Shown: positions 29,993 to 61,542, counted from the stretch's first letter. The stretch is 64,000 nt of DNA from Klebsormidium nitens (GCA_000708835.1 DF237119.1:98364-162363); one strand, 5' to 3'. The notes: generated by a model from the sequence alone, not told the origin. Program-made: numbers and translations.

Positions 29993-30290
29993 NNNNNNNN
30001 NNNNNNNNNNNNNNNNNNNNNNNNNNNNNNNNNNNNNNNNNNNNNNNNNNNNNNNNNNNNNNNNNNNNNNNNNNNNNNNNNNNNNNNNNNNNNNNNNNNN
30101 NNNNNNNNNNNNNNNNNNNNNNNNNNNNNNNNNNNNNNNNNNNNNNNNNNNNNNNNNNNNNNNNNNNNNNNNNNNNNNNNNNNNNNNNNNNNNNNNNNNN
30201 NNNNNNNNNNNNNNNNNNNNNNNNNNNNNNNNNNNNNNNNNNNNNNNNNNNNNNNNNNNNNNNNNNNNNNNNNNNNNNNNNNNNNNNNNN
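29993..30290. other. Assembly gap (298 N) between the divergent USP-D and USP-E starts
   Basis: Run of N in the sequence. Confidence 1.
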
Positions 30291-34070: not shown

Positions 34071-35283
34071 AGCGGGCGGGAGTTGCAAACAAGGCTTCGA
34101 AGACCGCTTAAGACATGCAGAGTTGAGGTTCTTTGAGAGAGGTGTATTTGCCACTTCGTACTTGTACAGACTACTGTTGAGTGTAGAATTTGATAACTAC
34201 CTATGGTTCTCCAAAGTCTAGATAGACCACCGGGATCATGAGCAGATCGCAAACTGGGTTATAAGTCACTGGCTTGCAGACATGTTAAGGCTTGACAGAG
34301 CTTCTAAAAGGGGGATGCTGCTAAGCTTAGCTTTGGGCTGGAGAGTTGCTCCAAGTAGAAGTACGAAGTTCTAAAGCTTTGTAGAATTGTAATATCAAAG
34401 CGCATATATTATTTTGGTTTTGCATGTCAAGCGAACATCTATATGGTGGATGGCGGTGAATGAGGAGAGGTACGAGAAGTCACAGTTGCAGACAGAATAC
34501 CGACGTGCATGCTCACACTTTTCTGGCTTTTATTTGTCTGGGGAAAGAGATCAATATTACCTATCATCCAGCCGCAGGTCCTACATGCCAAGCAATAAGG
34601 ACACGCAGATCCATCTAGTTAACCATGGCATCCAATCAGAACAACGTGTACGATTTCTCTTGACCTACTAGATCCAAGCTCTCGCATGATGTAGATTGTG
34701 CACAGAAAGGCGTCCCATCATGAGGAGCTCTTATAGATGCGGCTCGTTGCAACAGTTGATAGCGTTCTCTTTGATAATGCACATGATCAAGACAAGTTTA
34801 GATGTGCTGCAACCGTTTCGAATTATGTCGAGACGACCGTAGCCTTGCACATGTTTACACCCCGGAAGCATCCTGGCATGGTCTGCATGTACGTACACGA
34901 GACAGATCATGAAGGCTCAACGGAGCCGCTTCACAGTTCTGAACTCGTCTCGATTCAAAATATTAGCGGAAAGCTGGGCGCTGATGCGCTTTGAATGTGC
35001 CCTACCAAGCAACACTGGCCAGTCTCTAGAGCGACTATATAGAAAAAACCGATCTCACAGGATATGGAAGTGATCTAAGACGGGTTGGCCCTGGTAGACG
35101 ATGTGCTGAGCGGATTCAATTGCCGGATTGTATAAAAACGGCCAATATCGCGCTCTCAAACTTTTGACTCAGAAAAACAAGACGAAAGCGCGCCCTGTCC
35201 AGTGAACTTTGTCTTTGCAATCTGCTTGAACCATACAAAGACACCAATTTAGTTTCACAGCTCTGACCGCAGGCTACCTTCTC

Positions 35284-37724: not shown

Positions 37725-38706
37725 GTGCCCGCGCGCTTGGAATGGAAGGATTGCGGAAAGAAGTCCCTGTCTACGAAGCGGAATTCTGGTCGAACCGCGC
37801 GCAAAGTAAGTGGAGAATCGGGTCCTCCCTGCCCTTTCGCCTTTATTGCGCGCTTTCTTTGAACCTATTCCAAGTTTCCCTCAGCTCAGAATCTGGGCTT
37901 TTTCTGGTTTCCTTTGCGTGCCTTATAGGATCTTACATGCATTCACCTCCAACTTGATCGAAGTAACATGCAAGAAGGCTTGCGTTCTCTCTTAAAGACC
38001 CAATTTGACGAATATCGCAAACACTTGTGATGCGGTACCCATATCAGACCTCCAGCATTGAAGAGAGAGGAGTCTTCGGTTTTTGGCCACGCCGTATGGT
38101 GCTCATTTCGAAAGTCTGAAACCTGGTACGGATGTTTGCTCGACAATGTCCTCGAGTTTCCCAGGTAAGACGATTTTCGCGCGCTCAACTCTGAACCAAA
38201 TCAAGACTCCACCTTCGATTCGATACCGCTGAACTCTATACGACTGGGTGACAATGCTGGTTCAATCGTCCAGAACCTCAGTCTCTGCCTTCGTTTGAGC
38301 AGGAAAGGTTCCCAGATTCCTCATGTTGTGCACTTCTAAAGACGCGCCCTTCTATCCGGTGAATGATCGAACGAGTCGACCCTCCAACATTGTAAACCAG
38401 CTGTGAAGTGTCGACCAAAAAAGCTGCAGTTTCCCAAGAATCTTTAGATGATAGTAACCAGAGGCAGTTTCAAAGCGAGCAGGCGCCTCATGCAAACGCG
38501 TTCAGGCCTTCGCGCGCCGTTGCTATGCAATCCTCTGATTGCGAATCCTTCCAGCCCTTTATTCCAGACCCAGAATTCCTGGTGCCCTTCTGAATTTTGC
38601 TTGAAGTCTGCGTTCGAGAGTCATGAGTTCCTGCTGAGAAGCGCGCTTCTTCAGGGCAGCTGAGAGAAAAATTCTTCATCCTAGCTTCCCGTGCGCCCAC
38701 CAGAAC

Positions 38707-41416
38707 ATGGCGTCCGCCCCCGTGAAGACGGAATGTCCGTCGGAACCGCCTCTGCCCCGGAAGCCGTCCGAAACTGGCCGGGGCAAGCTCATCCTGTGCG
38801 CGCTGGACAATTCGGACGGGTCCGCAGCGGCGCTGCAGTTCGTGCTGGACAGGCTGGTCAAGCCGGAAGATGGCGACAAATTAATCCTGTTCCACGCGGC
38901 CAAGGACATCGACCTGAGTGAGCCACGTGGCACTCGTTGATTGGAAGAGCATTTGGACTGTGCTGTAAACGTGGTTGGAGGGCGAACTTGGTCTGGTTCT
39001 GGAGACTCGTTGGTTCCAGGGAAGCGTTCCCTCTGAGGTCATAGACGATTTTTGTCCGCATTCGCAGACATTGCGTGTCCTCTTGAAGCTTTCTGGGTTG
39101 CTTGGGGGCGTATTCCTAGTTTCGTGTGAAATGGTGGTCTACTTGGATTGCGTGCACGACAGACTCTTCGAGGATGTACCAGTCAGCTGTTCTTTGGAGA
39201 CATCAGCTTTAGGAAGTAGGCATCAGTTTTGGTGGTAGTAAGCTTGTTTATTCTCGGTTACAAAACACAGCTCGCATCAGTGGCAGGAAGGGGGATCCTG
39301 CCACTTTTGCTTCTCAGAGCTTCTGACCCAGTTCAGGTCCTTATACATGAATCCAGGCCCTAGCGAGTTGTTAGTTTTGAGGCGGAGGTTGTGAAGCACG
39401 TACGCCTCTGCTGGTTGCTCGATATCGGGAGCTCACTCTTTTAATATGTATCTAGAAGCATCATGTGTCCGCATTTCCAAAGATGGTCAAATTGTCAGAT
39501 CTTATTGTGTTATCGCTCAATAGCTGATTGTTCGTAGCAAGGGGGAATCCAGAAACTTTGTTGTGACAAAGATCTTAAAGACCCTTCCGGATCCGGCCGC
39601 GGCCCCGCCCCATTGCAGTTGCGTCTCGCAGATCCGCACCAAGGCCTAGGCATCGAGCTTTCCGTCAATTTTACCATTTTGCTGAATTCTGAGCTTGTTT
39701 CCTGCAGTCTGCACCAACGCGGAGCTCATGTTTGTACCCGACAGTGACATCGACGTGATGCAAGATCGCATCAGGCAAAAGTGCGTTGACGCTCTGGAGA
39801 TGCTAAAGCCTGAAATCCAGGTGAGCGAGTCGTTTAGTGTCAAAGCTGGCCGTTTCCTGGTTGCATGATCAGAGATACCGCGCAGCACTGCCGAGGGCTG
39901 ACCCGAATGCGACGATGCACATTTCCTCTCCGCTCTAGGCCTTCTCGGGTCCGCTTCTGTGAAGTGGTCCTACTTCTGGGCCGCTTGGGATTGGCAGCCA
40001 TCATTTTGTACTTTTTTGATTGCCTGGGACTGTGCACGCTGAGCTGATCGTTCTTTACATAAACTGACCAAGCTTCTGGCGTGGGCAGTCAGGGAAACTT
40101 AAAGCATCTTTATCAGTTGCAAAACCCAGATCGAGGCCGGAGATGCAGAATTTTCGTCTTAATGGGAAGGGCATTTGAATCATCGCCTTCGACCGCCAAA
40201 CGGCCCTGACAGCGTCTTCTACCGTAGAAAGAAAGCTCGCAACCCCGTCCTGCGTCGAACAGGAGGCGCCCCCATCAAACTCGCTAAAGACTGCGCTTTC
40301 TAGACAGGTTTGATCATTCGTATCAAGCCTAATCCAAATTTTCCGAATCTGCACAGGTGGAGACGGAGGTGGTCGTGGAGGTGGGGGATCCCCGGCAGCT
40401 GATCCCCGAACACGTGAAGCAGCACCACGTGGACATGGTGGTGGTCGGAACACGTGGCCGGGGGCCATTCAAGAGGTGGGCTTCTTGTTCGCACAGGAGA
40501 TGTTGGCAGCTAACCAGGCGAGCTACCAGAGTTGATTCTTAGATTGATTCTACAAATACCCGGGACTTAAACCTTGTTCCGAGGCTGGTTCCCGCCCAGA
40601 TCTGGTTATCGGACGTATAACCACTTACTAACCAAACCAGAACCGATTCAGAACCATCCTTGGTTAAGGGCCAAAATTTCCTGTGTCGGAGCCGTTTCTC
40701 GTCCCCCCCCCCTCCCCGATTCTCTGTCCAGCTCGCTTTTCCGTTTCCGAGCTTTTCTTCTTCCCTTTGACGCGGGCGGTCGTTCTTGGGACGGGTAATC
40801 TAAACTGTGGACTTCTTTGTCTCGCGATTCTTGATCTGCCACAAAAAATGGTGGAAAGTCTCCAGCCACCTTGGCAACTTCCCCCTCGAGCGACTCTCTT
40901 TCGCGAAGACATCGCCTACGCTCGATTTGTCCACCCTTCTTTTCGTATCCCTCCGTTCTTCCGATGCCCCGTGCTTGAACAATTCAGACGCTCCTCGGGA
41001 TCGATTCAAGCAGCGACGAATCTTAAGGCCTTGTATCACGAAGTAAGGACTCGTTTCTGGACATCCTCTTTCGCACTTTTCCAAGCAGCGTCCTTCCATA
41101 CTTGTTCGAGTAAACACTCTTTTCAAAGGAAAACCCTCGCCTTCCTTACGGACTCAGCCAGAAGATTGTATCCGCCATCCGCCGTGTGCAAGTCCACTAA
41201 CCGAGCACGGTTAGCGGTGGGTTATTCCCTTCGAATCGACGCAAGTTTCTCCGCTTCTACTGCAGCCTCCTTTTGGGCAGCGTAAGCAGCCACCTGTCCA
41301 GGCACTGCCCGGTGCCGGTTCTTCTCGTCCCCACCCCCAAGTCGCTACCGCACGATGAGGCGCGCAAGAAACCCGCTTCTGAACCGGGAAGTTCGCCGGG
41401 GAAGGAGCAGGTTTAG
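38707..41416 (+). CDS. Universal stress protein paralog G
   Basis: Exons 38707-38917, 39708-39820, 40357-40475 and 41266-41416. Motifs ILCALDNSDGS, GDPRQLIPEHVKQHHVDMVVVGTRGRGPFKSLLLGSVSSHLSRHCPVPVLLVP. Confidence 0.94.
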
Positions 41417-42550
41417 GGTTTAGCTGGGCGCCGATCGGAACGCGGCTGGTGGGCTCCGATTGAGCTCGGTCGAAGACACTCCTGACCAATCCTGGGCTCT
41501 TGGTTGCGGCCGCGGCATGTAGGAGAGCCTAAGCTTTATATCGAACGTACTGTTTACTGCAGCTAAGAAGTGTGAAATCTCAACAGGGAGAGACGTGCTA
41601 GACCGCTTGCAATCTGGGGCCCTACTAGTGTGTGACGTTGTAATGGGAAATGTGGTCGTCGAATTGTCTTCCAGAAGTATCCAGTAGTCTCAAAACTTCG
41701 TTGAGACAAGCGGATACATAGCAGAGGGTACGATAGAGGGTACTTCATAAATATATTCTGTACCGTTCGAAACATGCCCTGACGTACGGGCCCTCGCCTT
41801 GATCTGTCTTTGTTGCAAGTGGCGAATGTAGAACTCCAAGCTAGGAGAACAAAAACCAATGAGAAGGGCAGAAGAGGGAAACCTCACTGCAGAGGGTCAC
41901 ATGATGGAGTGCAATGCCCGAGAGTCTTCTACTACGCCGTATGCTGTGGCTCCACGATTTTCGCATGATGCGTGCACTACTCCGAGGCTCCTATCTGTCG
42001 CTTTTAAGCCCATGGTACATTCTGCTCCTCGTACTAAGACCAGCCTGGACAGTCATCATGCGGCTGATTGCTTACTCGAACCGTCCCGGTTCCATTCGAC
42101 ATTTGCCCGTTCCGTTCCATCAATTGTTGGCTAAAAGAAGGATGATGTCATCAATACATAACTAACCCCCGCCCACTACTCTAAAGCGTAAAGTGGGCCA
42201 CTCGTGCGAAGGTTGGAAGCCTCTTCCAAGCGCTAGAAATCGGCGCCCAACTGACGTTAAACATGCTCGCTATTGCATAATGGGCGTCTATTACGTTAAA
42301 AAAGGCGAGCGCATGCTTTGCGTACATGCTCAATGCGAACGTAGTGGCGTCAGATTGACTTGAAGGGGCATGCGCTGCACATATAAGTTACGTACTTCAG
42401 CTCTACGTAAGCACACCCTTTCAGTGACTTCCATGATGCATACTCCAATGATGTTTAAGACACATGTACCGTAATCTTAAAAGTAGCTTAACCTTCGATG
42501 GGCATCGTGTCAAAATATTTGTGCAATGGCGTCTGGACCTCCGGAAAAAA

Positions 42551-43029
42551 ACCGGCCACCAGGGGGGTGCGGTCAGAAATAGAGACGAAAAACACCGGCC
42601 ACCAGGGGTACCCAAGCCCCGGCGAGGAACAATTTGAGATTAGATATATACGACGATGGGGCCTGCAATCAAATTGCTCCACGTTGAGAATTCGAACCAA
42701 TCTACTTACAGAGGACTAGTGTGCGATTCAGAGCCGTATAAGACAACAACTGGGTTACATATGCGGCTGGACCCTTCATTTTTTTAGACAAAACCCGTTT
42801 TGGCATCTCGTCCTAGACCGGTCGGTTGGTGTGGCCTGTCCCATGCGGCTTCTCGCAGGGGGCGGGCAACCAATTTGGTACATATATACGAGGTTGAGCG
42901 TTTACTTATAGGCAGACTTTTCGACAATTTTGTGGGTTTTGATTGCTGATGAAGATGCTCAACCGGGCACCGGCCACCAGCCCCCTCGACTCTTCGCCAG
43001 GGAGCTTCGAGAACCGGCCACCAGCCCCA
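42551..43029 (+). repeat. Four copies of the 12-mer ACCGGCCACCAG in two pairs, between convergent USP-G and USP-H
   Basis: Copies start at 42551, 42594, 42969 and 43013 (pair spacing 43 and 44 nt). The left copies are followed by G-runs and the right copies by C-runs. Confidence 0.8.
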
Positions 43030-43781
43030 TCAAAGAGATTCGAAAAAGCGGATGTCCGGACGCCACTGCATAGGTGTTTTGACACGATGCCATGCGAGCA
43101 TCATCGAGGTAGCGTGTAACTCTCTCGAGAGCTTGAAGAGCACCAGCCTCAAAGGGAGGCATGACTCTGCATGTTTCCACACCAGGTTCTTGTAACCTGC
43201 AGACTCAAGTACGGCGACTCCCTGCTTAGCCCGAGAAGCTTCTGACAAGGTTATTTGGGCAGGACGGACATCAAGGTGCCGCTAGCAAGCATCTGCAGAA
43301 TTTGGGCACTCTACTTTGTGCACTAGTAGATACGTAGTAAGTAAATGAGGAAAAGGGGGAAAGAAAAGGTCGTTGGGCTTTTTGATTGAAAATATACAGG
43401 AGGTAGGAGTTTCCATAGACGCACTTCTATCGGGTTCGTTTGTCACGGAGCAACCGAAGTATGTGATCTTGAAGCCCGTTCCGCAGAACATTTTTTCTTA
43501 GCACGTGACTACTCTAAAACGGAGATACTGCATCTCTTCTAACGTACTATACAAACTCGTCTTTCGACAATAGGTAAATCGTACAGAGTCCTATTGAAAT
43601 TTTAGAAGGGTCCAACGAGAGACCGCTCCTTGCTTATGTACTCCTTTCTTGCATACAAACCCGTTCAATACATTGCACAAAATCTCTCTTCCATCTGACA
43701 TAGGCCATACCGTCATCAACAGCTGTCTTTTTGAGCGCCGTCTGCACGCACATGCTCCTGATGACGTCAGCGCCAGCGCTT

Positions 43782-46194
43782 TCAAGAAGCGGTCGCGTCG
43801 CTTTCCTTCTTCAGAAGCGATGCGGCAAACCTGGGGTTTGGGACGACGAGCACCGGAACCGGGCAGTGGCTGACCAGGTAGCTACTCACACTGCCCAGGA
43901 ACAGACTGCAGAGAACGTCGGGAAAACAGTAACGAATCTGCTCCCAAGCATCGAAAACTTTTGCGGGTTGAGAGTTCTCTTGTGCGAGTCGTTTTAGGAC
44001 CGGCTCTTGATGTCTTGCTGCCTCGGCCAGGTTCATGTTGTTTATCCCCACGGTTAGCTTCTTGCGGGTAACTCACAGCTTTTCGCATTTTGCTTCTTGC
44101 TGAGGGGCTTTGCGAAGCAGGCAAGGATCCTATTAATTGACCTACGAGGATCCAGAACAGTCTTTCCAGACAGGATCTGGGAAAGCACATGCAGGCGCGA
44201 TAATCTAAGATAGGGCATCGAGAAAAGATGACAACTCAGACATCCGCCTTCAAGGTAAGTCGATGGAATATGCTCGAATCTTCCGGTACAAACCAGATGC
44301 TGCCTCGAAGCGAGGGAGAACGTGACAACAAGCGGTTTCCCAATCGGAGTTGCGAGGAGCTTCTGGGCTGTCTAACAGTAGCCTGTTGACAGCAACCGAA
44401 CTTTCTTTTTCCTTTTCAGGAGCCGCTTTGGACGCAAGCACTGCCCTAAAACGGGACAATTCGTCTCCTAGGACTTAGACACGAAGGGATTTCGGCCTAC
44501 TTTGCGAGCTTATTTTCGAACTCTTGCCGGATACCTTGGCAAAGTCTTGAACTAGTTTGTTCCGGGAGAGGGGTTTGATTGGATATGACTCTTTGCGTCC
44601 GCATACGAGGCCGAAGACATTCAAGAAACCCAGCATACAGAAAAGGTTTTCAGATGACGTGGCAGATTTTTACTTCTGCACGGAGGAGCCCACCTCTTGA
44701 ACTTGCCCCGCCCCCGTGTACCGACCACCACCATGTCAACCGGATGCTTGGTGACGTAGTCAGGGATCAGCTGCCGGGGATCCCCCGGGAGAACCACCAA
44801 CTCGGCGTCTACCTGTGCGAACGGAAGGAGAGTGCAAGTATCAGACACGGCCAATTTGAGTCGCGGCTCGATAGGCGAAAGAAACTTGTATTTGTCCTCC
44901 AGAACAGATGATGGGATTATTGGAGCTTTGGAGCTCCAGTTTGGTCTGGTAGAGGTGCAGTTCGGCGTCTGATTGTTAAAATCAGCTGTATGTAAGGGCG
45001 CTGATCCAAGCCCCTAATTCCGTGCTGGGGTGACCGAATGTAGATCTTGCAGGATAGGACGAGCGGACTTTACAAAACCGACCAGGCAACCCACACGAAA
45101 GAACGGCAGGCTGCTGAATTGATTTTGTTAGTACCAATTGTAATTGAACTTCATGCATATTTGTTGCCTAGCTATGTGCTTCTAGCTCGCTTCTGGCTCA
45201 AAAGGGGGAATTTTAGCTACACTCGCAGCAGAAAGTTTGTGCCGTCTTAAATCGACGGGGTACAAGATTAACGTTGTAATCGGTTCAATATGACCAGAGG
45301 GACTCCTGGGGTACATAAGTTGACTTTGGGGATAGGATTTCTGCAATCAGGGTGATATGAAAGTACCTGGAGACACCTCTCACCAGCTGGTTGCTGGAGA
45401 AGCTTTTAAGCATTTGAGCAGAGACTTCACTGCCTACCTTGAATTGTTCCTTGATCTTCTTCAGGTTGGACAAGCACAGCTCCACGAGGCGCTCTTGGGC
45501 GGCGGCAATCTGGTTGTCTGGGACGAACATGAACTCCACGTCATCATACACTGTAGAACCAAACAAGAATATAAGGCTTCGCCACAGACTCTATCCACAA
45601 CGCTTTGCTTAAAGGAAACTTCTCAAAGCAGACTTCTCAAAGCGGACTTCTCTTTGAGTGGACAGGGCCTGACAATGAGAACAAGCGTGTGTTCACAGGA
45701 TCGTCCTACGTTGTTCTTTGAGGTGTGACTATCATACGCTGAATACGACACACGTCGTCAAGTTGAACGAGCACAGAGTTCGTCACAGGTTCGTCAAAAT
45801 AAGTTGACTGCGTCGCAAGCGTCTCCTGAGATTTGATTATAACGGAGATGGCTTTGCTATACAAGCCTTTGACCGCAATGCCTTGCAAAATCTAGCTGAA
45901 CGTTTTGACTCAAAGTTGTGCAGGGCAGTGCAGCTGAATTCAAGCAAGACAATCTAGTAGCACCAATCCTGCTCAACTCAAATCTCAAATTGCTCAACTC
46001 GCAAGCTTACTGTCAATGACCCTTGCCGCCTGGAACAGGATGAGCTTGTCGCCATCCTCCGGTTTCACAAGCGCATCCAGCACGAACTGCAGCGCCAGCG
46101 CGGACGCGTCCGAATTGTCCAAAGCGCACAGCACGCGCTTTCCGAGGGTGGCCTTCGACCGCCGGTTGCTTGTGGCGATCTCTTTGGAAGCCAT
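43782..46194 (-). CDS. Universal stress protein paralog H
   Basis: Exons 46194-46011, 45550-45438, 44812-44694 and 43905-43782. Motifs VLCALDNSDAS, GDPRQLIPDYVTKHPVDMVVVGTRGRGKFKSLFLGSVSSYLVSHCPVPVLVVP. Confidence 0.94.
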
Positions 46195-47546
46195 GTGGCG
46201 AGGGGCGTGAGCTGTTTTGAAAGGAACTGAGGGAGCGCAGGTCAGTGCAAAATGCGTAGTGTGGAATCTGCTCGGCAGCTCTAAACTCGTGGATTGCTCT
46301 GAAAAAGGACGGAGCAAGAATTCTTCTTTTCACGGATGAGGGGTCCAATGCAACTCGTTTGAGAACGGGTCCTGCTGCCACCGTATGAGAGCTTGTAATG
46401 ATCCACTGGAGCTCCACTGATACATTAGCAAATCTCAAATACACGGGGAATTAAACCAGCAGCTTTGCTAGACCCCCGGCGCAGTGATTGTGCTGAGTCA
46501 GCTTGGTTCAAGCACCCGGTGGGTGACGTTGGACTTGCAATTAAGGCTCCAAGCAGTACTAGTAAGGACAGGGCCGACCGTACACTTTAAATAGAAGCTA
46601 GCAGAGTGTGGGCGGATCTGTACTGTCCAAGGCCAAGCTAAGCCGGCTTACCTAGTATTGCACCGTCCTGCCCGGCAGACCGGCCCCCGCCCCCCGCCCG
46701 GCGCTCTCACTGGTTTGATTTCGCCATCATGTCGGCCGACGCTTCTCTTGAAAGCAACAGGTTGGCGATTTCCTGATTGGAACGGAATTTCACAGCCCGG
46801 GCGTCAAAGGAAACCAGCTAACTTTTTTTCCTGCGCCAAACCTTAGAATAATCTTACTGCGCCAGTGCTCAAGTGCTGATCTGGCGGCTGCTGAACAGTG
46901 AAAAGACGCAGCGCGGTGAGCGCGTCGCCCCCGCGTCGCCTTTCCGCGTCCTGCTTTGCAGAAAACGCAATCAGGAATATTCTTGCAACCCCACGTCAGT
47001 TGCCAGCTTGTCCGTTCAGTCCACCGGTCATCATTCTTGCAAGCTCGGGAGTCGGTACAACCGGAGTCCGCATGCCGACATCCAGGGCACCGCATTGTAC
47101 GGCAAAACGTCGGCGGCGCGCCGGCATTAACGACGTCCGGACTCCGTACACACTTAAACGGTCAGTCTTTTGCACGCGCGTTTACACGCGCATAAGCCGC
47201 AGCAAGCGAGTCGGCGCACTCCTTCATGGCCCCCCTGACTCATACTACGGTAGTCATAGGAGGCCCACAGGAGGGTGCTCTTCAGGAGAGCAGATGAGAA
47301 TCAGACATGCCTGATCTATGTATGGCTTCGATCAGGAAGGGGCACGAGTTGAGAGCGGAAAAGGCGGCCCATTGCACATGTGTGTAGGCAATTGCGACTT
47401 TGATCAGTCGATATTCTGGGGTGGGGCAGTTGTTAGCGAACAGCATGCGCGCCGGTCCGGTGTCCTTTCTTGAGACGCCCGGTGCACTTAGAATGTGCCC
47501 ATTCTTATGAGAGAGGATCAATGCAGTAAACCCCCTTCACTTCGCT

Positions 47547-50500
47547 ATGGCTGCGACAAAAGAGCATGTCGCCACCGGCAGGCGGCCCTCGCGGCGTGCT
47601 GGACTGGACGCAGACGAGCTGCCGGTGGCCGGAGAAGTGGACGGCATTCTCGCTGAGCTGGAGGAGCTTATCCACAGCGCTGAGCTGGCGCTCGCCGCCG
47701 GCAAGCACCGGCGCCAGGGCGAGCACGTGTGCACCGCCATGTGCATGAGGATACGGAGCTTGGAAGGGATGTTAGTGGCCGCTCCTGGCGTTGCTGCGGC
47801 GGCCGACAACCCGAGACGTGGTGAGGGTTTCGGGAGCAGGGGGCGGCCCAGAGGCGGTGCAGCTCCACAGGGGAATGAGACCGGTTCTGAAGAGGAGTCC
47901 GGAGGGGGCAGAGAGCAGGGAGGCGGGCCGGGAGATGCAGAGGGGCGAAGGCATTGGTCGGAGGTCTTTGATGAGAAGCAGAGGGAGTTGGTCGGGAGCT
48001 TGGTTGCGCGCTTGCCGGCGATCGTCAAACGGTTCGCCCAAGCGCAGCGAGCGCTTCTGTGCGACGTGGCAGACAATCTGATGCAGGTGAAGAACTCAGT
48101 TTCGTTCGTTCTCTTCTTGTCTACAACTTTTCTTGCTTTTGGCGGACTGATCGAGCATGATACCTCCACGCTGACCTTTTCAAGTATGTCTCATGCACTC
48201 AGTTCTTGCTGCCAATCGTGGCACAGTGCGACATGGCGTGACAATGTAGGGTGGCCACGCTTCTGAAAGAATCCGATGAGGCGCACTTATCCCCAAGCTA
48301 CCATATCCTGACAAATGCGCTGCGTGAAGTTGCAATCCATGACCCAGGGCAGCTAAGACCCTTCTGTGTGCCCATGAAAGACAGTGAACTGGAGAAGTAC
48401 TCTTCGACTAACCCACGGCCCTGACGCTCTGATGTTCAATCTATGGTGTTGCAATACACCAATACTCATTATACAAAAGCTTCTTCTCGTATACCGCCAC
48501 TCATCTGTTCTTTTGAGCCGAGCAGAATGGAATGCTAGTCATGAACGCGTTCTATGTTTGATTGCAGGCTCTGGACCTCCCGCTGGTGATGCAGGAACAT
48601 AAGCCCAAGAAGTCTGAGAAGGGCACCCCGCCCTGGGTCAAGCCCAAGCTACAAACCCCTGAAGGACTACAGGAGCTGGTGAGTAGTACACATTCCGGGA
48701 GGCAAGTCCGATTGCTGGACACACATTTGAAGTGGGACGAGTTGATGCATGAGACACTGCGGCACCACTTGATCAACTGCCTTTCTGCAACATTTTGATT
48801 TCTTGTCGGAGACCTCGTCCGGGAGATCGGTGCAGGGTGCCTGTGTAAGATGGGGTGTTCCTCGGTGTTGAAAAGTCAGTGTTGAGGACTGCTTAAAGGA
48901 GTGTCTAGGTTCCAAGGCAGTCGAGGCAGATCCCCAGAGGGAAAAAGTACATCGAGACAGTTGGAGTGATTGGCCGTTTTCAGCTTTTGTGCTGCACTCG
49001 CTTGTGATGCCACATTCTTTGATGGCTTTGCAGTAGAGGTAAAGAATTGTCTTCTCACATTATCTCTACATCTATCCAACTTTTGCTTTTTCAAAAACCC
49101 TGGCTTTTGTTTTTCTCAAGGTCACCCTGGCGAGAGACACCAAGTTCTGCTCGTACGAGGAAGTGGTGAAGCAGATTCAGCAGGCCAACCAGAGGTCCCG
49201 CAAGAAGCTCGGAGCTGACGACGGGTCGGGGAGCGAAGACTGCGCTCAGGGAGTTGAGCCGCGCGCCGAGACCTGGAGTATCCTGCTGACCTGCCCAGTG
49301 ACCCTCACGAGGATGCAGGTAGCGATCCTTTCTCCGTAGCCTTCTCTGTATCTCTTCCTTGCTCACGCACATTTACTCTGGCTTCTTCTTTGAATGTTGA
49401 GAAAACATGGTGTTGACACAAGAAGGACGTCTTGGTGACGGCTGCCTTCACAGAAACTCCATTTTTTTTTGGGACTCAAAACACGCAGCGGGGAGCAAGT
49501 ATGCTTATCTACGAAGCGTTTCGACCTGCAACGGAATGACCATGTATATAAACTCGTCGGAATACGAGAGTTTCGTACCTAGCCGAATGCAGACTGGCGC
49601 TGCGACACCTTGTCCCCGTGTTTAACAGGCCAGAGTCTTTGGGGTTGAAGTAACACGAGTGCATGATGTAGAACTGAGCTTCCTTTCATCTGTTACAGGT
49701 TCCGGCGCGCAGCCTGGCGTGCAAGCACCTGGAGTGCTTCGACCTGCTGTCGCATCTGCGGAGCAATGCGGGCACGCACCTGAAGCAGTGGCACTGCCCT
49801 ATCTGCAAGAAGAGCGCCACGTGGAACGAGCTCATCGTCGACAAGTACGGTGAGTGACACGTGGAGCGAGCTACGATTGACAGGTCTGTTGAGCGCCAGT
49901 GGAACGAGCATCATTATTGACAAGTACGGTAAGTGCTCTGCACGTTCGAAGATTCTGGCAAAAGCTTCAAGTCAGAAGTCTCCCGTGTGGTTTGCCGATA
50001 CGGAGGGGCGGCTATGCCAATCGACCTTGAATGAATTCTAGACCACGCTGAGTTTACTCTTAACGGTGGTACTCGTCTAGATCGTTAAGGGATACCACTA
50101 TCTTTGTTGCTCTCTAAGAGCTTGATCAGCAAAGGAGCATGGTCGCAGTATCCACTTTTTCGGATCAACAGGCTAGGAGCGAGGTTTATGTAGGGCTTTC
50201 TCGAGAACGCAGTTGGATAATCGCCACCGAGTTTGTGTACTTGTGGGTTAAATGCAAATCGAGATACCTCGTCGTTTTTCATGCCGAATTCTGACTAGTG
50301 GCACTTTGGTCACAACGCTGATTGCTTACTTATAGATGCGGCGCGTCGAATTTAGATCCATCATCCGCAGTCAATGCACCGTTTAAAAACCACTTCGAGT
50401 CAAAATGCAAAGCAAGCTTGCCTTTTTAGCACTAGCTTTCTAGTCGTCAACGTCATTCTGATGAGTATAAGATCTTTACAGAGCTTTTCCTGACGCTTCA

Positions 50501-53500
50501 CCCCTATGCTGACGATATCTCCTTCCTCCCCTCCTGATGCAGTCGAGAAGCTGCTGGCGGACGCCCCCCCGGACGCGTCCGAGCTGGTCATCCGTCCGGA
50601 CGCCAGCTGGGCGGTCAAGTCCGCAGCGGAGACGCTCGAGAAGCTGGGCTTTCTGCGCGAGTTCGTCAATCTGGCGGACTCCGCGGACGATTCGGACAGC
50701 GACGGAGAGGTGCACTCAGCAAAGGCGACGCTCTCCCCCTTTCAGGATCAGGCTAAACCTCCCTCTCCGATTTCGAAGCTTCGAGAAGAGGAGTCGAATC
50801 CAGTGCCGGAGAGGATCCGGGTTGAGCTGGAATTGGCAGATGAGGAAGCACAGGACGAGGGCGAGACGGAGGTTAGTGCTAACCCGCCGGGTCAAGGCGT
50901 AACCAGCGCGGGCGGGTCGGGGTCTGCGAGCCGTCCGGCCACGCCAGAAGAAGGCAGCCCGTTGGGTTCTGGGCTGAGGCATGCGGCCCGTAGATACGCT
51001 GCGCGGCTGCTGAGGAACTTCGTGAGCCCCCCAGAGAAGCAGCCCGGGGTTGCCGCTACTGGCGGTCCTGTGCGCAACGGAGAGCCGGGTCCAGACCTCG
51101 CGCCTGACCCTAAAACGAACCCTTTGGTGCCGGAACGTGGCGGGGAGGCAGCGTCGACAAGTCGGAGATTCTCCCTCGCGACCCCGAGGGTGATCGAGGC
51201 CGAGAGGGGGGGGTTTAGACAGCCGGGTAAGACCAAGAGCGGAACGGAACCCAAGCAGCCGGATGCCGTGCACGGAAGCGATCGCGGCCGAACCGGCGGC
51301 CGCCCTAGTTTGCCGGTAGGACGGCGAGAGCTGGCGGGACTTGACGCGCAGGCTCCGGTCCCTGAGTCGAGACTCCGGGGGAGTAACCCGGAGACTCGGA
51401 GGAATCTCCCTGGGAACAAAGACCCCGGCACCCCAGAGAAGGCTGTTGGGCAGTCCGTGGGGAAGGCGCAGGCGCAGACGAAAGCGAAGACGTTTGGGTG
51501 GGGCGGAGCACGGGTCAAGGGGAGCGGATCGAGAGCGGAAAAAGCTGGAGACGGGGCAAAGCGGGATCAAGTGGGCGGTTTGCAGACGCAGCGGAAAACA
51601 AGCGAGTGGGGGGTGAGGCGTATCAAGGGGATTGGGAAGCGCTCGAAACACGCTTCTAGTGTGAATACGGGCGGCTTGGGGGAGGGGGGTGATGCGGGCG
51701 CGCTCGGAGGGGGGGTACAGCGGGGACGAGGGGCCGGGCGGGAAGGGCAGGGAATCGAGCTCAGCAAGATGGCGAGACATTTGCAGAAAGCGCGGCAGCG
51801 GAAGGAAACGCCTGGAGAAGGGGGAGAGACGGGGCTACGGCGGAAAAGGAAAGCGTCTCGCGACGGGAAGCCTGCTCGGAAGAAGCGGAAGCACGTCAGT
51901 GTGAATGAGCTCGCCGGGGCGGGCCCTCGCAAGCGGGGGAGGCCGCCGAGCGGGGATTCGGAGGCCCCCCGGAAGAAGAACAGAGAAGAGGGCGGCAGTG
52001 CGGGTTTTGGAGCCGGGATCGGATCTGGTGCGGCTAAGGCGACGGGGAAAGTCTTCCCCAGGAAGAGGGACGGAACGTTCGCTAAGGTAGCGGATGCTGG
52101 AGCCAAGATCGTGTCCAAGGGGAGGGGTTGGGTTAGCTTGACGACCGCAAGGGCTGGCCCGGTCAAAAACGGGCCCCGTAACGTCCTTGAGAGCGGCACT
52201 CGCTCGCACAGCGAATCAGACAGCGACGTCCCGATCGCCCGTCTGTCAAAGGGCACGACCCCGGGGAAGGTTAAGGGAACCGCGAAACCGGCGGGTTTGG
52301 ACGAGGGTTTAGGAGAGGGTTTCGGGAAGCGGGTCAGGAAGCAGTCGGTGAGGCTCGGCGAGCCAGTCAGTGCGGTGCAAAGCTCGAGGTCTGGGGGGGT
52401 TTCGGGGTTTGGACCGGATTTGGGTTCCGTATCCGACTCGGGCTTCTTGGCGGCTTCGGGCTTTGGACCAGGAGGCTTGCCGAACGATTCAAGCCCGATC
52501 AAAAGCAAAGTGAACGTCGAGAAACCGAAGGATGGCGGCACAACCCCTGATTCTGCGAGGGGAGAGTCTGCGAGGGGAGAGACGTCTGGTCGCGCTGCGC
52601 AAAGCGGGAGCACTAAGCTTGGAAGGGAGTCGGGTGAGAAAGTCCGAAGGAGCTCTGAGAGTGGGGTAAAAGCGCCGAGCGAAGCAGGGAAGAGCACCCG
52701 GGCAGTCGACAAGAGCACACTCGCCTTTCTAGAGGCGCTGAGCCGAACAGAGCAGAAGCACGAAGAGTACCTGAGGAAGAAGAGTTCGGAGCGGGGGGGC
52801 GCAAACACCGCTGGGAAGACCGCCCCAGAGAAGGGGAGGGGCGAGAGCCGATCGCCTTTGGATCGGGGGGGCGCAAGCACTGCCGGGAGGTACCCCCCAG
52901 AGCAGGAGACTGGTGAGAGCCGAATGCCGGCGACCGGCTTTGAAGTGCCCCTTCCCGAGGCGAGCAATGGGGAGACGCAGCAGGAAGGGGGGGTGAGCGC
53001 AACGGACTGGGAGGCGGTATTTAGGTCTAGATCGACCCCCCCGGAAGTGAGTGGCACTGCACAGGCGAATACAAGACGGGAACCCGAGTCAAGTGCTTTG
53101 TCAGAAAAGGTTAACTCGGACAAAGGAGCGGAGGATAACGGGGCGGATTCCGTGGGCCGGAAAGGCGAAGCGCAAACGGCGGGGTTGGCGGAGAAACAAA
53201 AGGAAGGAAGCGCAGAGAAAGGAGCTGCGGCGAGCGGAAGGGCAACTTTGGGGGCTGCCAATGTGGCGGTAAGTCACGCTGATCACAGATGCACACCCAG
53301 GCACGTACAAGAAATTAATAAGAGGCACGCCATGCCTGTCTCTTCTAGGGAGCGGGCCAAGATTATGGCCTGTCAAACGCCGGATAAAGTCCGAGATAAT
53401 GTCATGTAGCATGTAGGACGTCCGCTGGCTCAGATTAGCCTCGTTGAGGATGGTGCGCGGAACCACAATGAACCAAGTTCAGAAGCGGACGCCCTTTTGA

Positions 53501-56500
53501 GTGATCCTAAAGGCTGCAAGCATCGTGAGAGACTAGGGTTTGTGGTAAGAACTACCGAACTTAGCCGCTGAGAATCAGGGCGGTGGGAACGAAGGGACGG
53601 GAAGGATAAAACAGATGGCCATATCAGTACAGAAGGGGAAGGAAAGTCACTGTAAGGTGCGAGTCCTGTAAAGGTGCCTTTACTAATTCGGGTCTTCTTT
53701 GATGCGTGTCAGGTGTCCCTTCAGAACACGGCCTCATACTCTTGCGACACGATCGCCTGCCATCATCCACACGACGGTGGCATCAAGTCGGTGGCGAATA
53801 AGGGGACGGTCTGGTTCGAAAAAGACTCGATGCAAGTGCAGCTTTCATTCAGGAAAGAGCTCGGGCTGCCACCCCGAATTTGGCCCCTGGAGGACGTCGG
53901 CCTAGTTATGGGCTTCAGGGCAACAGCATCAGAATGGCCATGTCAGGTGAGCTCTGTTATTTTCTACTGGTCCAGTGCACCGATGTTGGCGGGACAAGTT
54001 TAGTAGACTGCCGTTCTTGTTGGAATTCCTTCCTTCTATCTTAGGCTTTTGTTTGACGTGAAAGTCCACTGAATTCAAAATGGTTAGCAAGCGTTTGGGG
54101 CTTGATGTGTTGGAAGAACCGACTGAGGAGGCTCGTCAAATTGCCGAACAAGGGCTCTTTCTTTTCTGTCAGTCCCTTCTGATTGATCTTAAAACCGACA
54201 AAGTGAATTTTTTTTCTGCCGTTCGAAGTTAATCTAGCAATCCTCGACGTCGGAAAAGAGTCTGAACAAGGGCGCTCGTTGGCAGGACCTCGCGTCTCAG
54301 AGGTGCGGCAGAACGGCTCAGTGTGATGTATTCAAGTCCGCCACAGTACGTAGACTCACTTACGAAGTTGGTGATCAGGCAGACCGTTTGAAGCCTTGGG
54401 GTCTTTAATGAAGAGTCGTTTAAGCCCGCGCATGGGTATTTCGGGCGAAATCGCAGACCAGATTGACGACGCCCCAGTACAGGAACTACACTCAGGCGTT
54501 TTGTGTTTGGGCATTGTCGTCAATTGACATACCCAAGGCAATCGCTTCCCACTCTACTCACGGCGACGTGATTACATCCGAGGCTCTTTCACCTTCCCAT
54601 AGACCTGCAGAAGTCTGACCTACCGGAGAAAGCTAGATGTCAGAATGATATCAGAGTGACATCAGCAGGAAATTGCAAATGGCAGGCCGCTGGCATTGCT
54701 TCTCCTTGATCAGCCTCCGTTCCGATGACCTGCTATAAACAGTGTCTCCGGTTATACGCACAGGAGTGCATCGTGATCGCCGTTTTGCTTCAGAAGGCGC
54801 TGTCCCCGGATTCGACGACACAGGGCGGGCGCCAGCGAGGTGAGTTGGCAAGACATCGCAACCTGTGCTGCTATTTGCATTCAGTGTGATCTACTTCGTC
54901 TGGCGAACACCACAGGATGCAACCCAGGCGGACAGATTTTAGGTGTCGAGCTCTCAGGTGGGGGTTTCTTGAAGAGTTTATAGTGCCGCGTCACTGGTAT
55001 AAAAGCCCCGGTTTTTCTGCTAGTACCGTTACCTTTTAGTGAACTGCATCGTTGATGCTGCGATCTACGATCTTCTAACAGAACCGTTCCCACTGGTCGT
55101 CTCCAAGTGATCCCAAGCTTCCCTGCTTGCCTTTCTCTCTCTTGCCCGCCGCAGAGATTCATAATCGCGCGTCAGTCACGTAAGGCGAGTCTGCAAGGCG
55201 TTGCGGAACCTCTGGGCGTCATTGCGCTTTGACGACTGCGTTCGCATGCTCTTTGCAGGTGCAGACCCCGCCTTTATTCTCTTTGAGATCAACGCTGACG
55301 AATGGGGCAGGAAGCAGGCGCCCCCGAAGTGGACCGAGCGCATCACTTTCGTGGATGTCGAGTGAGCTTCCGCTCGTGTCTTTTTCGTCCGGTTCTGTTC
55401 CGCTTGTCCTCGGCTCCTCTTCTTTCAAATCTCGATTTGCAGAAAAGACGCTGCTTCTCGTCCGAATTCTGCTCGTGTCCTTTCCAGACTGCCCTGAATT
55501 GGTTTTGTCTTCAGTCTTGTCCTTGCTTTTTCAACCCCTGTTCCACTCTCTCTCCGTCCGCTCTGATCCGTTCTACTCTTCCGCTGACTGTGAGGGCCAC
55601 ATTCTGACCATCCCTTTTCACATGGATAAAAGTTGCAATGAGGCGTACGCTCAGGGTCTGTTTGAGCTGCGTTTCCGGGAAGCCCGTCTCCATTCTCAAC
55701 ATACAAGGACACTTCCGCTGCTTGCGTGTATAGTGAATGCATCGACGAATGCGTCCGTGACTGAAGTTGTTGGAAAAATGTTAAGAGCTCTAAATTTATC
55801 CAGCGCCGAGTTGCCGCGCATGTTCTGCTCCGCCTCCAAGCCGGGCGCGCTTATGTAAAGCTTTGGTCTCCCCTGTTGCTCTGCGCCGTTGCCTTTCAGC
55901 TCCTCACCTTCGACAGTATCGATGGTTGCTGTGGACGTAACTTCGCTGTAACTGTTCTGTGTTGTCGTCGGGGAAAACGAGCTGCTGCGGTCTTGCCTTT
56001 GCGCGACTAAGGAAACTCTCACAGGGCCGCCGTCCGACTGCGCTGTCTGATTTTAGACTGGACTGTGGTTTTCAGGAGCGACATTGCGGGAAGTACAGGG
56101 TCGCGGGCCCGTGACGTCATTGCCCGCGAGCGGAGGGACGCACTCTGGGACAGGTGAGTCTGCCGGATCGAGCCAGCCTCTTGGCGGGCGAGGTCAGGAA
56201 ACTCCCCGGTGGTGTGCGCTCATCATGACGTCAGCGTAATCCGAATAGCACAAGCTGGTACCCGGTTGGATGTCTTCTTCCGCTGGCACTTGTCACGTTC
56301 GGACTCACCGCCGGTACCCACCCTTGCGTGCCAAGGTTCTTGAAACTGTGGCGAATGCCCGTTTCCGGACAATTATGCGTGGTCAAAAGCAAAGAGCTAC
56401 TTGTCAAAACTTCTGAAATGCAACAACGGCCTTAGCGTCAGCAATGTCGATGACCGTTCAAGAGCACCTCGCAATCATCGTGCATTTGCCAAGTGAACGC

Positions 56501-59500
56501 TGGGTAGCCATTAAAGTCGTGAATAGTGCTTGTTGCGAAGGGTAACTAGACCTGGGTCTGTGCCAGCTTTGGAACCGACCAACTATCGTAATCAACCCGT
56601 TGTATTGTCCGTTTTGTCGATCAAATGCCCAGACCTGCCATCTTTCGTTTCCCGTGCAGAGCTATCGCAGAGTGCACTACTCTCGTAGAACTCCCAAAAG
56701 AAGCGCCTCTCGGTCCGGCCTCACCAGAGCCTGTTCACACCACCCCCGTCAGCGCCCCCAGAGAAAGCGCGCCCGTCACACCGGTTGCTCGGGAAGTCCA
56801 AGAGCCGCCGGCAGTGGAACGGACGTCCAAAGAGAAGGAGTCCCCACCAAACCCCCTGCCGCCTTCTCCGTCCGTTCTCCCAGATACCTTCCGAACAGCG
56901 GAATTGAGGGAAACGAGAGGCGGAAACGGAAGCGAGACTGCGGAAGGTGCTGGCGGCCGGAGGGATCCCCCGGGTGCTGGTCCAAGGCTTGTTGTGAGTG
57001 GAGAGTCGTTGAAGGAGGGCGGGGCGAAGGGAGCCGTCGAAAAGGACGTCCGGAAAGGAGACAAACCGTCCGAAAGCGACCCGCGGACAGCCGACGGTGG
57101 CCCGGCAGGCGAGGGAGCTCGCAAGGAGGAAGCGGGAAAGGGAGCCATAGAAAAAGACGTCCGAAAAGAAGATACACGGTCCGAAAGAGACCCACGGACA
57201 GCTGAGGATGGGCCGGCAAGCGGAGGAGCTCGCGAGGGAGAAGCAGGAAAAAGACCCGTGACGAAAGACGTCCGAAAAGAAGAAAAACCGTTTGAAAGAG
57301 ACACGCGGACAGCTGAGGGTGGGCCGGCAGGTGGAGGAGTTCGTGGCGATGAAGCGGGAAAGCGAGCCGTAACAAACGACGTCCGAAAAGAACATGAACG
57401 GTCCGAAAGAGACCCACGGACAGCTGAGGGTGGGCCGGCAGGTGGAGGAGTCCGCAAGGAAGAGTCAAGAAAGGTAGCCGTGGAAAAGGACGTCCGGAAA
57501 GTAAAGGGATCGACGGTAAGAACCCAGCGGACAGCGGAAGGTGGGCCGGAAAGCGAGGAGAATCGGGAGGACAAACGGGAAAAGGGGGGGATTGCTGAAG
57601 ATGGGGGAGGCAATGCGTTTGCGGAGCGGTGGAGAGCGGGCTTGCAGAAGAAGGACGCTTCCAAGGGCAAAGAGGTAAAACATCGTACGAGCATTCGCTC
57701 TTGGAGGACTATTCTTACTTGTTCTGGCTGCCAATACTTGAGACTATTTTCTAGACTATTTTCGTCTGTAAAAGTCCGGCGGTAAAAGTTGGTGATGCAA
57801 TTCTGGGCTGAGAAATGCTTGATGGACGAATTACGGTCCAATCATGGAAGACCCCGTTGAAGTGCCTGGTCGAGTAGAGACTCACCAACTGGCACCTAAA
57901 CCAAGAGTTGACGCAAGTACAGTATGCCGCCATTTGAGGCTGCTCAGAGGCAATGATTCTAGGAGGGAGGAGATCAAGTTCGGTAGTGGTAGCCGTTTCG
58001 CGGGATTCCCGTTTCAAGGAACCGGCAGAATTGAAAGCCCGTTTCCATGGCTCCTTAAAGGAGGGAAGAGCAATGCGATATTTTGGTCGGACGATGGAAT
58101 CGAGATGACCGATTGTGGTAACAAACCAGTGCCACACTCCCGTGAGAGGGGCGAGACTCAGGCTTGTGTGCGACAAGGTGCGCCCAGAAAATGATCCGCT
58201 GCGCCTCGAACACTCGACTTTCAATGGTCAATCTTTGCATATCGAAGCTCCTTTGCTAGGACTTGCATCAGCCCTTTCATCTCCGGGCCTCCTAAACGCA
58301 GGAACAACGTTTTGTTTCCAACGGGGTGTTCGATGTGTTCCAGATAGGCGGGCAATGTATAATTCACAGTATTCTCGTCAAAAATGTCAATCTCGCACCT
58401 AAATTGGCGTAGCAACACGTTGGCCCTGCATATGACGGTCCCGAACTTTGTGTCCAGGTGCCTCCAGCGCAGACAAGAGAGACTGCGCCCCCGCGGTTCA
58501 ACAGCAACCGCTTGCGTGTGGGCACCTTGACCGTCCGGCAGGGCACCGTCCGCTTCACTCGCGACGGACTGAAAGTTTCTCTGGTGCACCGGAAGCCGGA
58601 ATACTGGTCGGAGCAGCTCGAGTGGCCGTTGGAGGAGCTGGGTCTTGGCTACGCGTCCCTTTTCCCCGCCGCATCGGTAGGAAGTCCGGAAAATGGGATA
58701 GAGCGTCTGAGCTTTGCCATGGTCGGACATCCGGAAAAAGACACAAGAACGTCTGAGCTTTTAACCTTCAATTTCCAACGGAGAGCTGGTTTGCCTTTGC
58801 GATTTGCTTTTGAACTTGAAGCTGTACTGTGTGAGTTCTAAATAAAGTCTGAGAACGCCAGACTTTGGTAGAAGTATGGCTGCGTTAGGGTGTCGAGGAT
58901 TTTGCCGCTTCCACGCGCTTTGGTGCGCGCTTCTTTGCACTTGCTACTGAGATGGAACGTTTAGTAAATCTTAAGTTCAGCGGAAATTTCATGAGCGGAC
59001 CGGATCACCGAGCCGCAGAATTCGTCCTTGAGGGGTTTGCTTGGAAAGAAGAACACAATAGATGCTTTCATTTCCTGCTGTCTCGTCAGCCCTACGTCAC
59101 GGCTATACTCACGCAATGTAACTGTAAGGCGGCGAAGGCTGATCAGCGTAACCCGTTTCTTAGAGAGGATGTTTTACTTCCGGATGCACGAATATTTGCT
59201 GCAGAAAACTTACATAGGCAAGTCCTTGAACCACTCTTCAAGTTGGGATCCCCTCCCGACCTGCAGCAGATGCGAAAATACCTATTGTCTGCGCAACTGC
59301 GAGTTTCCGAACCCCCTGAGTTTTTGACGCTTGGAGCGCAACAGCATCTCGGGCTGGTCCTTTGCAGGATGTTTCTTCTCTACAGATTCACCAAAGCTTA
59401 GATATAGCGAGGTCGTACCCTTGCACAAAACACCTAACTCTCAAATCACCTGCTCCGCAGCCGTACCCACCCTAAACCCCCAATGTAACCCCACCCCTCC

Positions 59501-61542
59501 AAGGCTGGTTAGCTTCCTATAGTTAGAGCTTACTATAGCTAAATCGAGGTTTATATCTGCAGGGTGGGAACGATTACGCTGTCATTCGTCTGGCTTTGAA
59601 GCGGGGGATCCCTTGGCAAGTGGCCAATCGTCTGGGCACCACCGTACAAGGTCGGCACGCCTGTTCATTATCTTTCCGTGGTCCCTCCTTCTCCTGCGTT
59701 CGTGAAGCTTTTTCCTTTTAGAAGCGCTCAAAGAGCTCTAACGTTATTAGTTCTTCTGGGATCTTCTGACTGCTCCATCCAATCGCTGTTTTCCCAAGCT
59801 ATCTCGCCGGACTTTGTATGACGGATGAGACTGACGCTTTCGGAGGGTGATCAGAACGCGCTTGCAAATCTGGTTCCTTCCAAAGGATGTCGGTCTTGTG
59901 ATCTCGCTCTTCTTGTTAGTGCTCTAAGTCGCGCGTGGGAAGGACAAAAGGTGGTGGGACCACTTGGAGCAAAACGACGTCTGAGTCCATACTAACGAAA
60001 AGGATATCTAGTTTGATGAACGTACTGGCCAGACGATCAGAAGGACGAGTCGGAAAAAGCTACGCAATAAGAACTTCGCGGTTGTCTGCAGATGCCGGAG
60101 CGCCGGTTGTCGTGTTCGAGCTGCGCTTGAGTGACTGGAGGAAGGTCGAGTCCTTCCCGGCATGGAGGGGCTCCTGCGGATCGTGCTCTTACGTGTAGGA
60201 CGCCTACTGCTTTCGTCACACTCGGCCTGTCGACTGCTATTGTGCTTGCTGAATCAATCAGAGGATTGTGGAGCCTAGCTTGTACCGTCCCTCTTTGTCC
60301 TTGTTAGCATGCTAAACAGCACCAAGGCTCAGAAAAGGGAAGCCTCTCCCGATCAAACGAGTGGACGGCGTGCCCACGCAACGGCTTTGTTAACTTCACA
60401 GTCTCACTTTCGTTTCGAAGTTCGGGACGCATACAGACGCTTAAATCAGAGGAGCTACTGCAAGAGATTGAGAGCGTGTGTCGACGTCGCGTTATTCGCG
60501 CGCTTCTAGCTTGACTTGTGTCCAAGATTTATGCCTCGCGACCTTTTTGACGGTGGATTGTGAGTCCCTGAGGCAGCTACAGGCGTCTTCTTAGACGCCA
60601 CACGGTTGAATCTGCTGCTCACCAATCCAGATCTGAGGCCGTTTTACGTTCACCGGTCTGAACAAGTGGATCTCATCTTCTTTTTAGTTACTTTTGTGAC
60701 CTCAGAAGAATTAACGAGCAAGAGCTCCTTGTAAGCTGTGTTTCCTAGGCTACATACATCAGTGCCCCGCTGCCGATCCTCGGTAGATTTCATGATGTTC
60801 AACTCTGACACACCCAGAAGGGAATTCTATTTGCAGTTACGCGTACTATCTGAAGGAACGGCGGGACTGCAACGAAGATGTTCGTGATTGGCTATGGAGG
60901 AGGTGAGACATCGTCACTCCTCTGTTTAGCGTAATTACCTATGTGGTCAGCAGACTGTCGTTGGGCACTTGCCAGCGTTTTGGTTTTCCTTGAAAAGCCC
61001 TTTATTTAGTTCTAGGCAATATTAGCGTGCTGGTACTTTGAAGTGAGCCTGATCTACCACAGAAGAAGTCTAAATAGGCCTTGTCTAAGCGGTGAGCAGC
61101 AGCGTACACGTACAAGACGCCAAAGCCCGCTGAAACACTTTTTGACAGCAGAAGCAGATTTCCCTCCTGCAGAGACGCTGAGTGGTTCGATAAAGACACG
61201 GCAAACCGTTGGCAGCTGGGTTCCAGGCCCGTCGCTCGAATGACTCGTCCGGCGACACCTGCTGACGCACCGGCTGACGCCATCACGGGCAAGGGTGGGA
61301 ACCGGGATACCCAACCGGGGGGAGCCGGAGGCGCGCAACGAGGGGAACCAAGTGCCCGGGGAAAAGCAGCCCGGGCAGTGGGCGAGGGATCCCCCCCCCT
61401 GACCCGGGGACAGCGCGCCGCCAGTCTGGGCGACCTGAATATTGACCCGCACACGGAAGTGATCGATCTGACGCTTGAAGCGTCGGACGGAGAAGGGGAG
61501 ACGATTTGGAGGAAAGAGAGGAAACGGCGGAGAGCTGGTTGA
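47547..61542 (+). CDS. Large SP-RING (zf-MIZ) SUMO E3-ligase-like protein, about 2020 aa, with two PH-like modules, 37-aa repeats and a C-terminal SIM
   Basis: The 15 phase-consistent GT-AG exons are 47547-48086, 48568-48678, 49121-49318, 49699-49849, 50543-53268, 53713-53946, 54764-54839, 55259-55361, 56076-56153, 56660-57674, 58458-58676, 59563-59650, 60092-60182 (weak donor), 60837-60902 and 61173-61542, summing to 6066 nt. The SP-RING reads LTCPVTLTRMQVPARSLACKHLECFD..WHCPICKK..LIVDKYVEKLL..ELVIRPDASW. The SIM reads EVIDLTLEASDGEGE. The SP-RING call is strong; the single-gene model is less certain. Confidence 0.75.
49280..49849 (+). other. SP-RING/zf-MIZ domain-coding segment (spans one intron)
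   Basis: The C-P..R..P-x-R..C-x-H-x-x-C-F-D..W-x-C-P-x-C spacing is the canonical PIAS/SIZ SP-RING pattern. Confidence 0.92.
57030..57560 (+). repeat. Five imperfect 111-bp (37-aa) coding tandem repeats
   Basis: The anchor GACGTCCG recurs at 57045, 57156, 57267, 57378 and 57489. The consensus peptide is roughly GAVEKDVRKEEKRSERDPRTAEGGPAGGGVRKEEAGK. Confidence 0.95.

Follow-up and report, generated by a model that had tools for sequence, protein, structure and literature searches.

The question raised by positions 47547-61542 of a 64,000-nucleotide (nt) stretch of Klebsormidium nitens DNA (GCA_000708835.1 DF237119.1:98364-162363; the window, within which all positions are counted) is whether the region encodes one SUMO ligase and whether the two modules in its C-terminal half are borrowed from SUMO proteases. 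An earlier note, made from the sequence alone, had described an SP-RING ligase joined to two PH-like modules of the SENP6/7 type and to a distant SUMO-interacting motif (SIM). Our analysis points to one nuclear gene of 15 exons, probably encoding a PIAS/Siz-type SP-RING SUMO E3 ligase of ~2025 residues with an unusual architecture. A single gene on the plus strand fits the whole region, with GT-AG boundaries at all introns and an uninterrupted frame of 6078 nt (2025 residues) that runs from an ATG at 47547 to a TGA at 61540-61542. The region is eukaryotic and intron-rich, with a GC content near 52%.

RNA contigs of four runs from four studies were compared with positions 53000-59000. In all four runs, contigs 100% identical to the locus and GT..AG-spliced on the plus strand were found; the runs are listed only as 'RNA?', yet spliced joints cannot derive from genomic DNA. 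Two species labels occur among the runs, and the 100% identity between them fits a change in the name of the strain. The contigs carry the joints 53268/53713, 53946/54764, 54839/55259, 55361/56076, 56153/56660 and 57674/58458, and the loose end of a contig adds a seventh, from exon 11 to the exon 12 acceptor at 59563. Each run yields one ~2550-nt contig extending from ~51750 in exon 5 across exons 6-9 into 56660 onward. The tandem repeat of exon 10 fragments the RNA assemblies into short unitigs, which cover it, and the next contig carries the 57674/58458 joint, leaving exon 10 and both of its flanking joints fully covered. Coverage of exon 5 spans ~51750 to the GT donor at 53269; the long contigs begin just past a G-rich run near 51710, apparently a break in the assembly rather than the 5' end of a transcript. 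The exon holding the SP-RING tail and the long disordered stretch, the first module, exon 10 with its repeat, and the beginning of the second module therefore share one mRNA. RNA thus shows expression and places exons 5 to 12 on a single spliced message; the earlier claim of one transcript stands on RNA for these exons and on prediction for exons 1-4 and 13-15. Unspliced contigs of low depth (2-3x) inside introns 6 (54231-54496) and 11 (58687-58983) are most simply read as pre-mRNA traces.

The 5' part of the gene, exons 1-4 and the start of exon 5, was placed by hand and by script from splice sites and frame. Exon 1 (47547-48086, residues 1-180) opens with the ATG, encodes a helical N-terminus and ends its open reading frame (ORF) at a CAG/GTGAAG donor. 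The predicted exon 2 (48568-48678, residues 181-217), a short basic linker in phase 0/0, is bounded by a cag/GCT acceptor and a CTG/gtgagt donor. Splice sites and phase define exon 3 (49121-49318, residues 218-283), a pre-RING segment ending in ..SILLTCPVTLTRMQ, which reads into exon 4 (49699-49849, residues 284-334) and thereby completes the SP-RING. Exon 4 contains the SP-RING/MIZ core (C-K-H .. C-P-I-C) and ends in LIVDKY. The open frame of exon 5 (50543-53268, residues 334-1242) begins with a PIAS-like tail (VEKLL..VIRPDASW) followed by ~880 disordered residues. Module 1 occupies exons 6-9 (53713-53946, 54764-54839, 55259-55361 and 56076-56153; residues ~1243-1406), and a charged, disordered spacer with a tandem repeat fills exon 10 (56660-57674, residues 1407-1744), both read from RNA. 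Module 2 occupies exons 11-14 (58458-58676, 59563-59650, 60092-60194 and 60837-60902; residues ~1745-1903), of which exons 13 and 14 are predicted. The model closes with exon 15 (61173-61542, residues ~1904-2025), a disordered tail bearing the SIM, a basic RKERKRRR cluster and the TGA, whose link to the transcript is likewise predicted. All of these exons lie on the plus strand, and the numbering agrees with that given earlier for the two modules.

Long antisense ORFs lie opposite exon 5 (51567-53261, minus strand, 564 residues) and exon 10 (56735-57841, minus strand, 368 residues). They are best explained as a by-product of the purine-rich coding strand; every splice joint reads GT..AG on the plus strand.

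The catalytic assignment is carried by exon 4. Alone, this exon matches Pfam PF02891 (zf-MIZ) with 46.9 bits (E 2.4e-12; cut-off 33.5), and its closest solved chains in the PDB are PIAS2, PIAS3, Siz1 and Siz2 (E 3e-7 to 6e-6), bearing out the canonical SP-RING that had been proposed. No Nse2 chain appears among the PDB matches at E <= 0.01. The zinc ligands of the C-x-H ... C-P-x-C pattern are all present and align with those of PIAS2, PIAS3 and Siz1 (C, H, C, C). The domain spans residues 270-334 of 2025, with only ~280 residues upstream. Beyond it, the tail LIVDKY-VEKLL..VIRPDASW crosses intron 4 through a split codon and is PIAS/Siz-like by eye only. The PIAS2 alignment to the SP-RING stops at LIVD, ahead of the tail, and the first 67 residues of exon 5, searched alone, match no PIAS/Siz chain in the PDB.

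Apart from the SP-RING exon, no exon matches a Pfam family. PINIT is not detected in exons 1-3 (E <= 1 to 10), and SAP and PHD are not detected in any exon, as the earlier note had observed; its statement that no protease catalytic domain is visible also holds, peptidase C48 being absent from all 15 exons scanned. Exon 1, which has no Pfam family and lies only 103 residues from the RING, is modelled by AlphaFold2 (AF2) at a mean confidence (pLDDT) of 65 as helices at residues 27-51, 55-78, 128-140 and 143-179 with a disordered stretch between. In a Foldseek search against the PDB, nothing matched this model at E <= 0.001, and what did come up were generic helical bundles.

The 908 residues of exon 5 are dominated by G, A, S, R, E, K and P (69%), with 15% hydrophobic residues and no Pfam family, and contain a bipartite basic cluster resembling a nuclear localization signal (residues 766-784, 51838-51894); composition and motif scan together bear out the ~900 residues of charged disorder with such clusters described before. 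Two AT-hook-like R-G-R-P motifs are present, SRGRPRGG in exon 1 (~47838-47849) and PRKRGRPP in exon 5 (51934-51957), and these motifs might supply DNA contact in a ligase lacking SAP. The exon 10 repeat, detected with Tandem Repeats Finder (TRF) at 57027-57560, is a charged unit of 111 nt (37 residues) in 4.8 copies with 77% matching.

Modules 1 and 2, each of ~160 residues, are paralogues that arose as tandem duplicates of a four-exon unit. Exon 6 matches exon 11 by BLASTP at E 1e-6 (z 9.9), and exon 8 matches exon 13 with z 6.5 (p ~5e-4). The intron phases of the two modules are identical (0/0, 0/1, 1/2, 2/2), and exons 8 and 13 are both 103 nt long. It is from this combination of exon similarity, matching phases and a common 103-nt exon that duplication of the whole four-exon unit follows. 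The predicted order of elements in each module is four strands, one strand, two strands and a Trp-bearing C-terminal helix. An AF2 model of half a module (exon 11, with exon 6 as the second row) recovers four strands at low confidence (pLDDT 50). A PH-like fold, a sandwich of seven strands capped by a C-terminal helix, would suit this succession of elements, which does not by itself show one. The modules described in the earlier note are therefore present, related to each other and folded in appearance; the kinship with SENP6/7 that it drew from them is without backing, as set out below.

Together, these features suggest how the protein might work. SUMO-loaded E2 (SCE1/Ubc9) would dock on the SP-RING and its tail, which would promote discharge of the SUMO; the basic cluster would direct nuclear import. 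In place of SAP, loose contact with chromatin could come from the long disordered arms together with the pair of RGRP AT-hook-like motifs, and the N-terminal helices with the two β-rich modules may select partners and substrates, a task that falls to PINIT elsewhere in the family. Separated from the RING by a flexible tether of ~1650 residues, the VIDLT SIM near the C-terminus would bind SUMO carried by targets already modified or by the backside of the E2. At SUMO-rich sites this would promote multi- or poly-SUMOylation, a role comparable to that of the SIMs in PIAL-type chain-forming ligases.

Several observations weigh against the reading of the locus as one long SP-RING ligase. Its orthologues were found neither in protein nor in contig searches. 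SUMO ligase activity is predicted, and the roles given to the modules, the AT-hook-like motifs and the SIM are putative. Exons 1-4 and 13-15, together with the exon 12 donor, rest on sequence, making the N-terminus and the SIM link models. In X10, the run of greatest depth, the contig stops 190 nt beyond exon 11; exons 12 and 13 sum to 191 nt, and the contig end is therefore placed at the end of exon 13 (60194/60195), a break that may reflect alternative splicing or intron retention. Finally, a second candidate last exon at 60421-60511 carries its own stop and would end the protein before the SIM.

The last two observations bear on whether the SIM exon belongs to the protein at all. The mRNA could end after module 2, for example via 60421-60511, leaving 61173-61542 untranslated or on another transcript. 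RNA joints are seen only up to exon 12, the compared stretch ending at 59000; the X10 break hints at two continuations from exon 13, and the 60421 exon is in phase, encoding a helix-like peptide followed by a stop. Its acceptor, however, scores under the threshold, and it was ranked below 60837-60902, whereas exon 14 at that position has the strongest splice sites of the region (acceptor 11.1, donor 10.5), shares its 2/2 phases with exon 9 and encodes a Trp-containing, helix-like peptide. The 88-nt exon 12 and its counterpart, exon 7, both end in phase 1, and exon 13 has the phases of exon 8. Both acceptors of the SIM ORF, at 61173 and the alternative 61227, are in phase with exon 14, and the ORF is purine-rich and of disorder type in composition, like exons 5 and 10. 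In three runs, RNA contigs extend 792-821 nt past exon 11, a length that fits exons 12-15 plus a short 3' untranslated region of ~170-250 nt. A protein ending before the SIM is, on this evidence, unlikely. Exons at 59722 and 59830 were also considered and excluded by in-frame stops on reading by hand.

In the 15-exon model, the SIM core EVIDLT lies at 61456-61473, 22 residues before the stop, and is followed by the acidic LEASDGEGE (to 61500). VIDLT is the PIAS-type SIM motif, and a motif scan finds EVIDLT to be the only acid-flanked SIM in the gene model. The PIAS-type SIM that had been noted near the C-terminus is thus found with its acidic tail, its place on the transcript being predicted.

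A protein with this domain set could also be a ligase-like scaffold, in which the SP-RING, SIM and modules assemble a chromatin or silencing complex without active E3 function, as others have argued for PIAL2 with MOM1. Two studies term PIAL2 'SUMO E3 ligase-like' and place it in the MOM1 silencing complex (PMC6084981, PMC8064691), and PINIT, the substrate-positioning domain, is not detected here. Such a role is nevertheless quite doubtful: the four zinc ligands and the SP-RING core are intact and align over their full length with active PIAS/Siz enzymes, and PIAL1/2 themselves form chains in vitro (PMC8064691). An SP-RING ligase is kept as the preferred reading of the gene.

The remaining proposal concerns the modules, which would be homologous to a PH-like domain located before the catalytic domain of SENP6/7- and ULP2-type SUMO proteases, so that ligase and protease share a targeting module. 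It grew out of a motif likeness, R-x-R-V-G-T-L followed by hydrophobic strands, and a PH-like fold could accommodate the succession of strands and helix in the modules. The module 2 query, exon 11 (73 residues), contains this motif (RLRVGTL..GTVRF). An exhaustive phmmer search with it against 1.84 billion representative proteins gave three matches, none of them SENP, ULP or C48, although a 73-residue single sequence cannot exclude remote homology, which may be invisible to such a search. The three matches are tandem-repeat artefacts and not relatives. The search also returned no self match; the public protein of this gene is therefore missing from the library or lacks exon 11.

Other searches gave the same picture. 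Pfam at E <= 10 yielded nothing for any module exon or for the tail, and exons 6 and 11 had no meaningful match among PDB sequences. ESM Atlas feature matches to these two exons were dropped, with scores < 0.9 and low recognition. Viral, prokaryotic-genome and metagenome contigs scanned with a two-exon alignment held no relatives; a 20-residue bacterial match (L001) is a chance hit selected by the search pattern itself. A word search with the exon 5 ORF (967 residues) gave no match among the 532-1692-residue proteins covered, a range that misses a public model of 2025 residues. Full-text literature searches found no description of a PH domain in Ulp2 or SENP6/7, and the SPF1/SPF2 study reports conservation of the catalytic domain only. 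With phmmer, Pfam, PDB, ESM Atlas, contig scans and literature all blank, homology of the modules to a SENP6/7/ULP2 targeting domain is very unlikely, and the idea of a ligase that recruited such a domain is unsupported with it, no sequence relation to C48 proteases being detected. If true, this sharing would mean that writers and erasers of SUMO chains are aimed by one common module, a notable arrangement that is so far without support.

To our knowledge, plants are credited with only three SUMO ligase classes, SIZ1, MMS21/HPY2 and PIAL. That the modules represent a PH-like SUMO-, ubiquitin- or chromatin-binding domain common to ULP2/SENP6/7 proteases, making this gene a fourth, undescribed class of the plant lineage, is improbable. 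The K. nitens gene is expressed and codes for an atypical SP-RING ligase of PIAS type, a variant within the known ligase family.

The gene lies beside an array of at least five universal-stress-protein-like paralogous first exons, spread over 28900-46320 on both strands and accompanied by matching C-terminal exons. These first exons (28920-29225, minus; 30848-31324, plus; 37452-37724, minus; 38707-38940, plus; 45994-46317, minus) have the common motif ..VLCA.D.S..S..A..F..D..V.PE.GD..LF.. The nearest, at 45994-46317 on the minus strand, points away from the ligase gene, with ~1.35 kb between the two start codons, confirming the head-to-head arrangement reported before. An assembly gap (N run) at ~29990-30330 falls within the array.

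A PIAS-type ligase without SAP or PINIT, equipped with its own two duplicated modules and a far SIM, would mean that the targeting of SUMO ligases had been rebuilt in an alga close to where land plants arose. The protein is also well suited to showing cleanly how a SIM on a long flexible tether influences the formation of SUMO chains.

Among known SUMO-pathway proteins, the PIAS/Siz ligases (human PIAS1-4, yeast Siz1/Siz2 and plant SIZ1) resemble the K. nitens protein in their SP-RING zinc ligands and give its best sequence matches. The exact SIM type, VIDLT with acidic residues, is also common to both, and a post-RING tail of the type L-I-x-D-x-Y ... D-x-S-W may be, as judged by eye. In contrast to these ligases, the K. 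nitens protein has a helical N-terminus, lacks detectable SAP, PINIT and plant PHD domains, and is two to three times longer. Its SIM lies ~1650 residues from the RING, compared with ~100 in PIAS/Siz, and it adds two duplicated modules without detectable relatives and an array of 37-residue repeats.

NSE2/MMS21 (HPY2) likewise carries a helical region directly before the SP-RING and has no PINIT. NSE2 is a protein of ~250 residues with a C-terminal RING, whereas the K. nitens RING, at residues 270-334 of 2025, matches PIAS/Siz, and its helical N-terminal model has no structural match. Between the K. nitens modules and the segment that precedes the catalytic domain in SUMO proteases of the SENP6/7 and ULP2 type, the only likeness is the motif resemblance noted earlier, a sequence relation not being detectable.

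The E4-type, chain-forming PIAL1 and PIAL2 also combine a PIAS-type SP-RING with a lack of SAP and PHD and with a long, poorly structured C-terminal part. PIAL1/2 retain PINIT, with its PTNVT motif (PMC8064691), a domain not detectable in the K. nitens protein; because of this difference, the gene is not filed as a PIAL. Klebsormidium has no PIAL entry in the table of a recent survey (PMC11371177). Chain formation by PIAL ligases depends on their SIM (PMC8064691), and this functionally important motif suggests a similar chain-promoting mechanism for the K. nitens protein.

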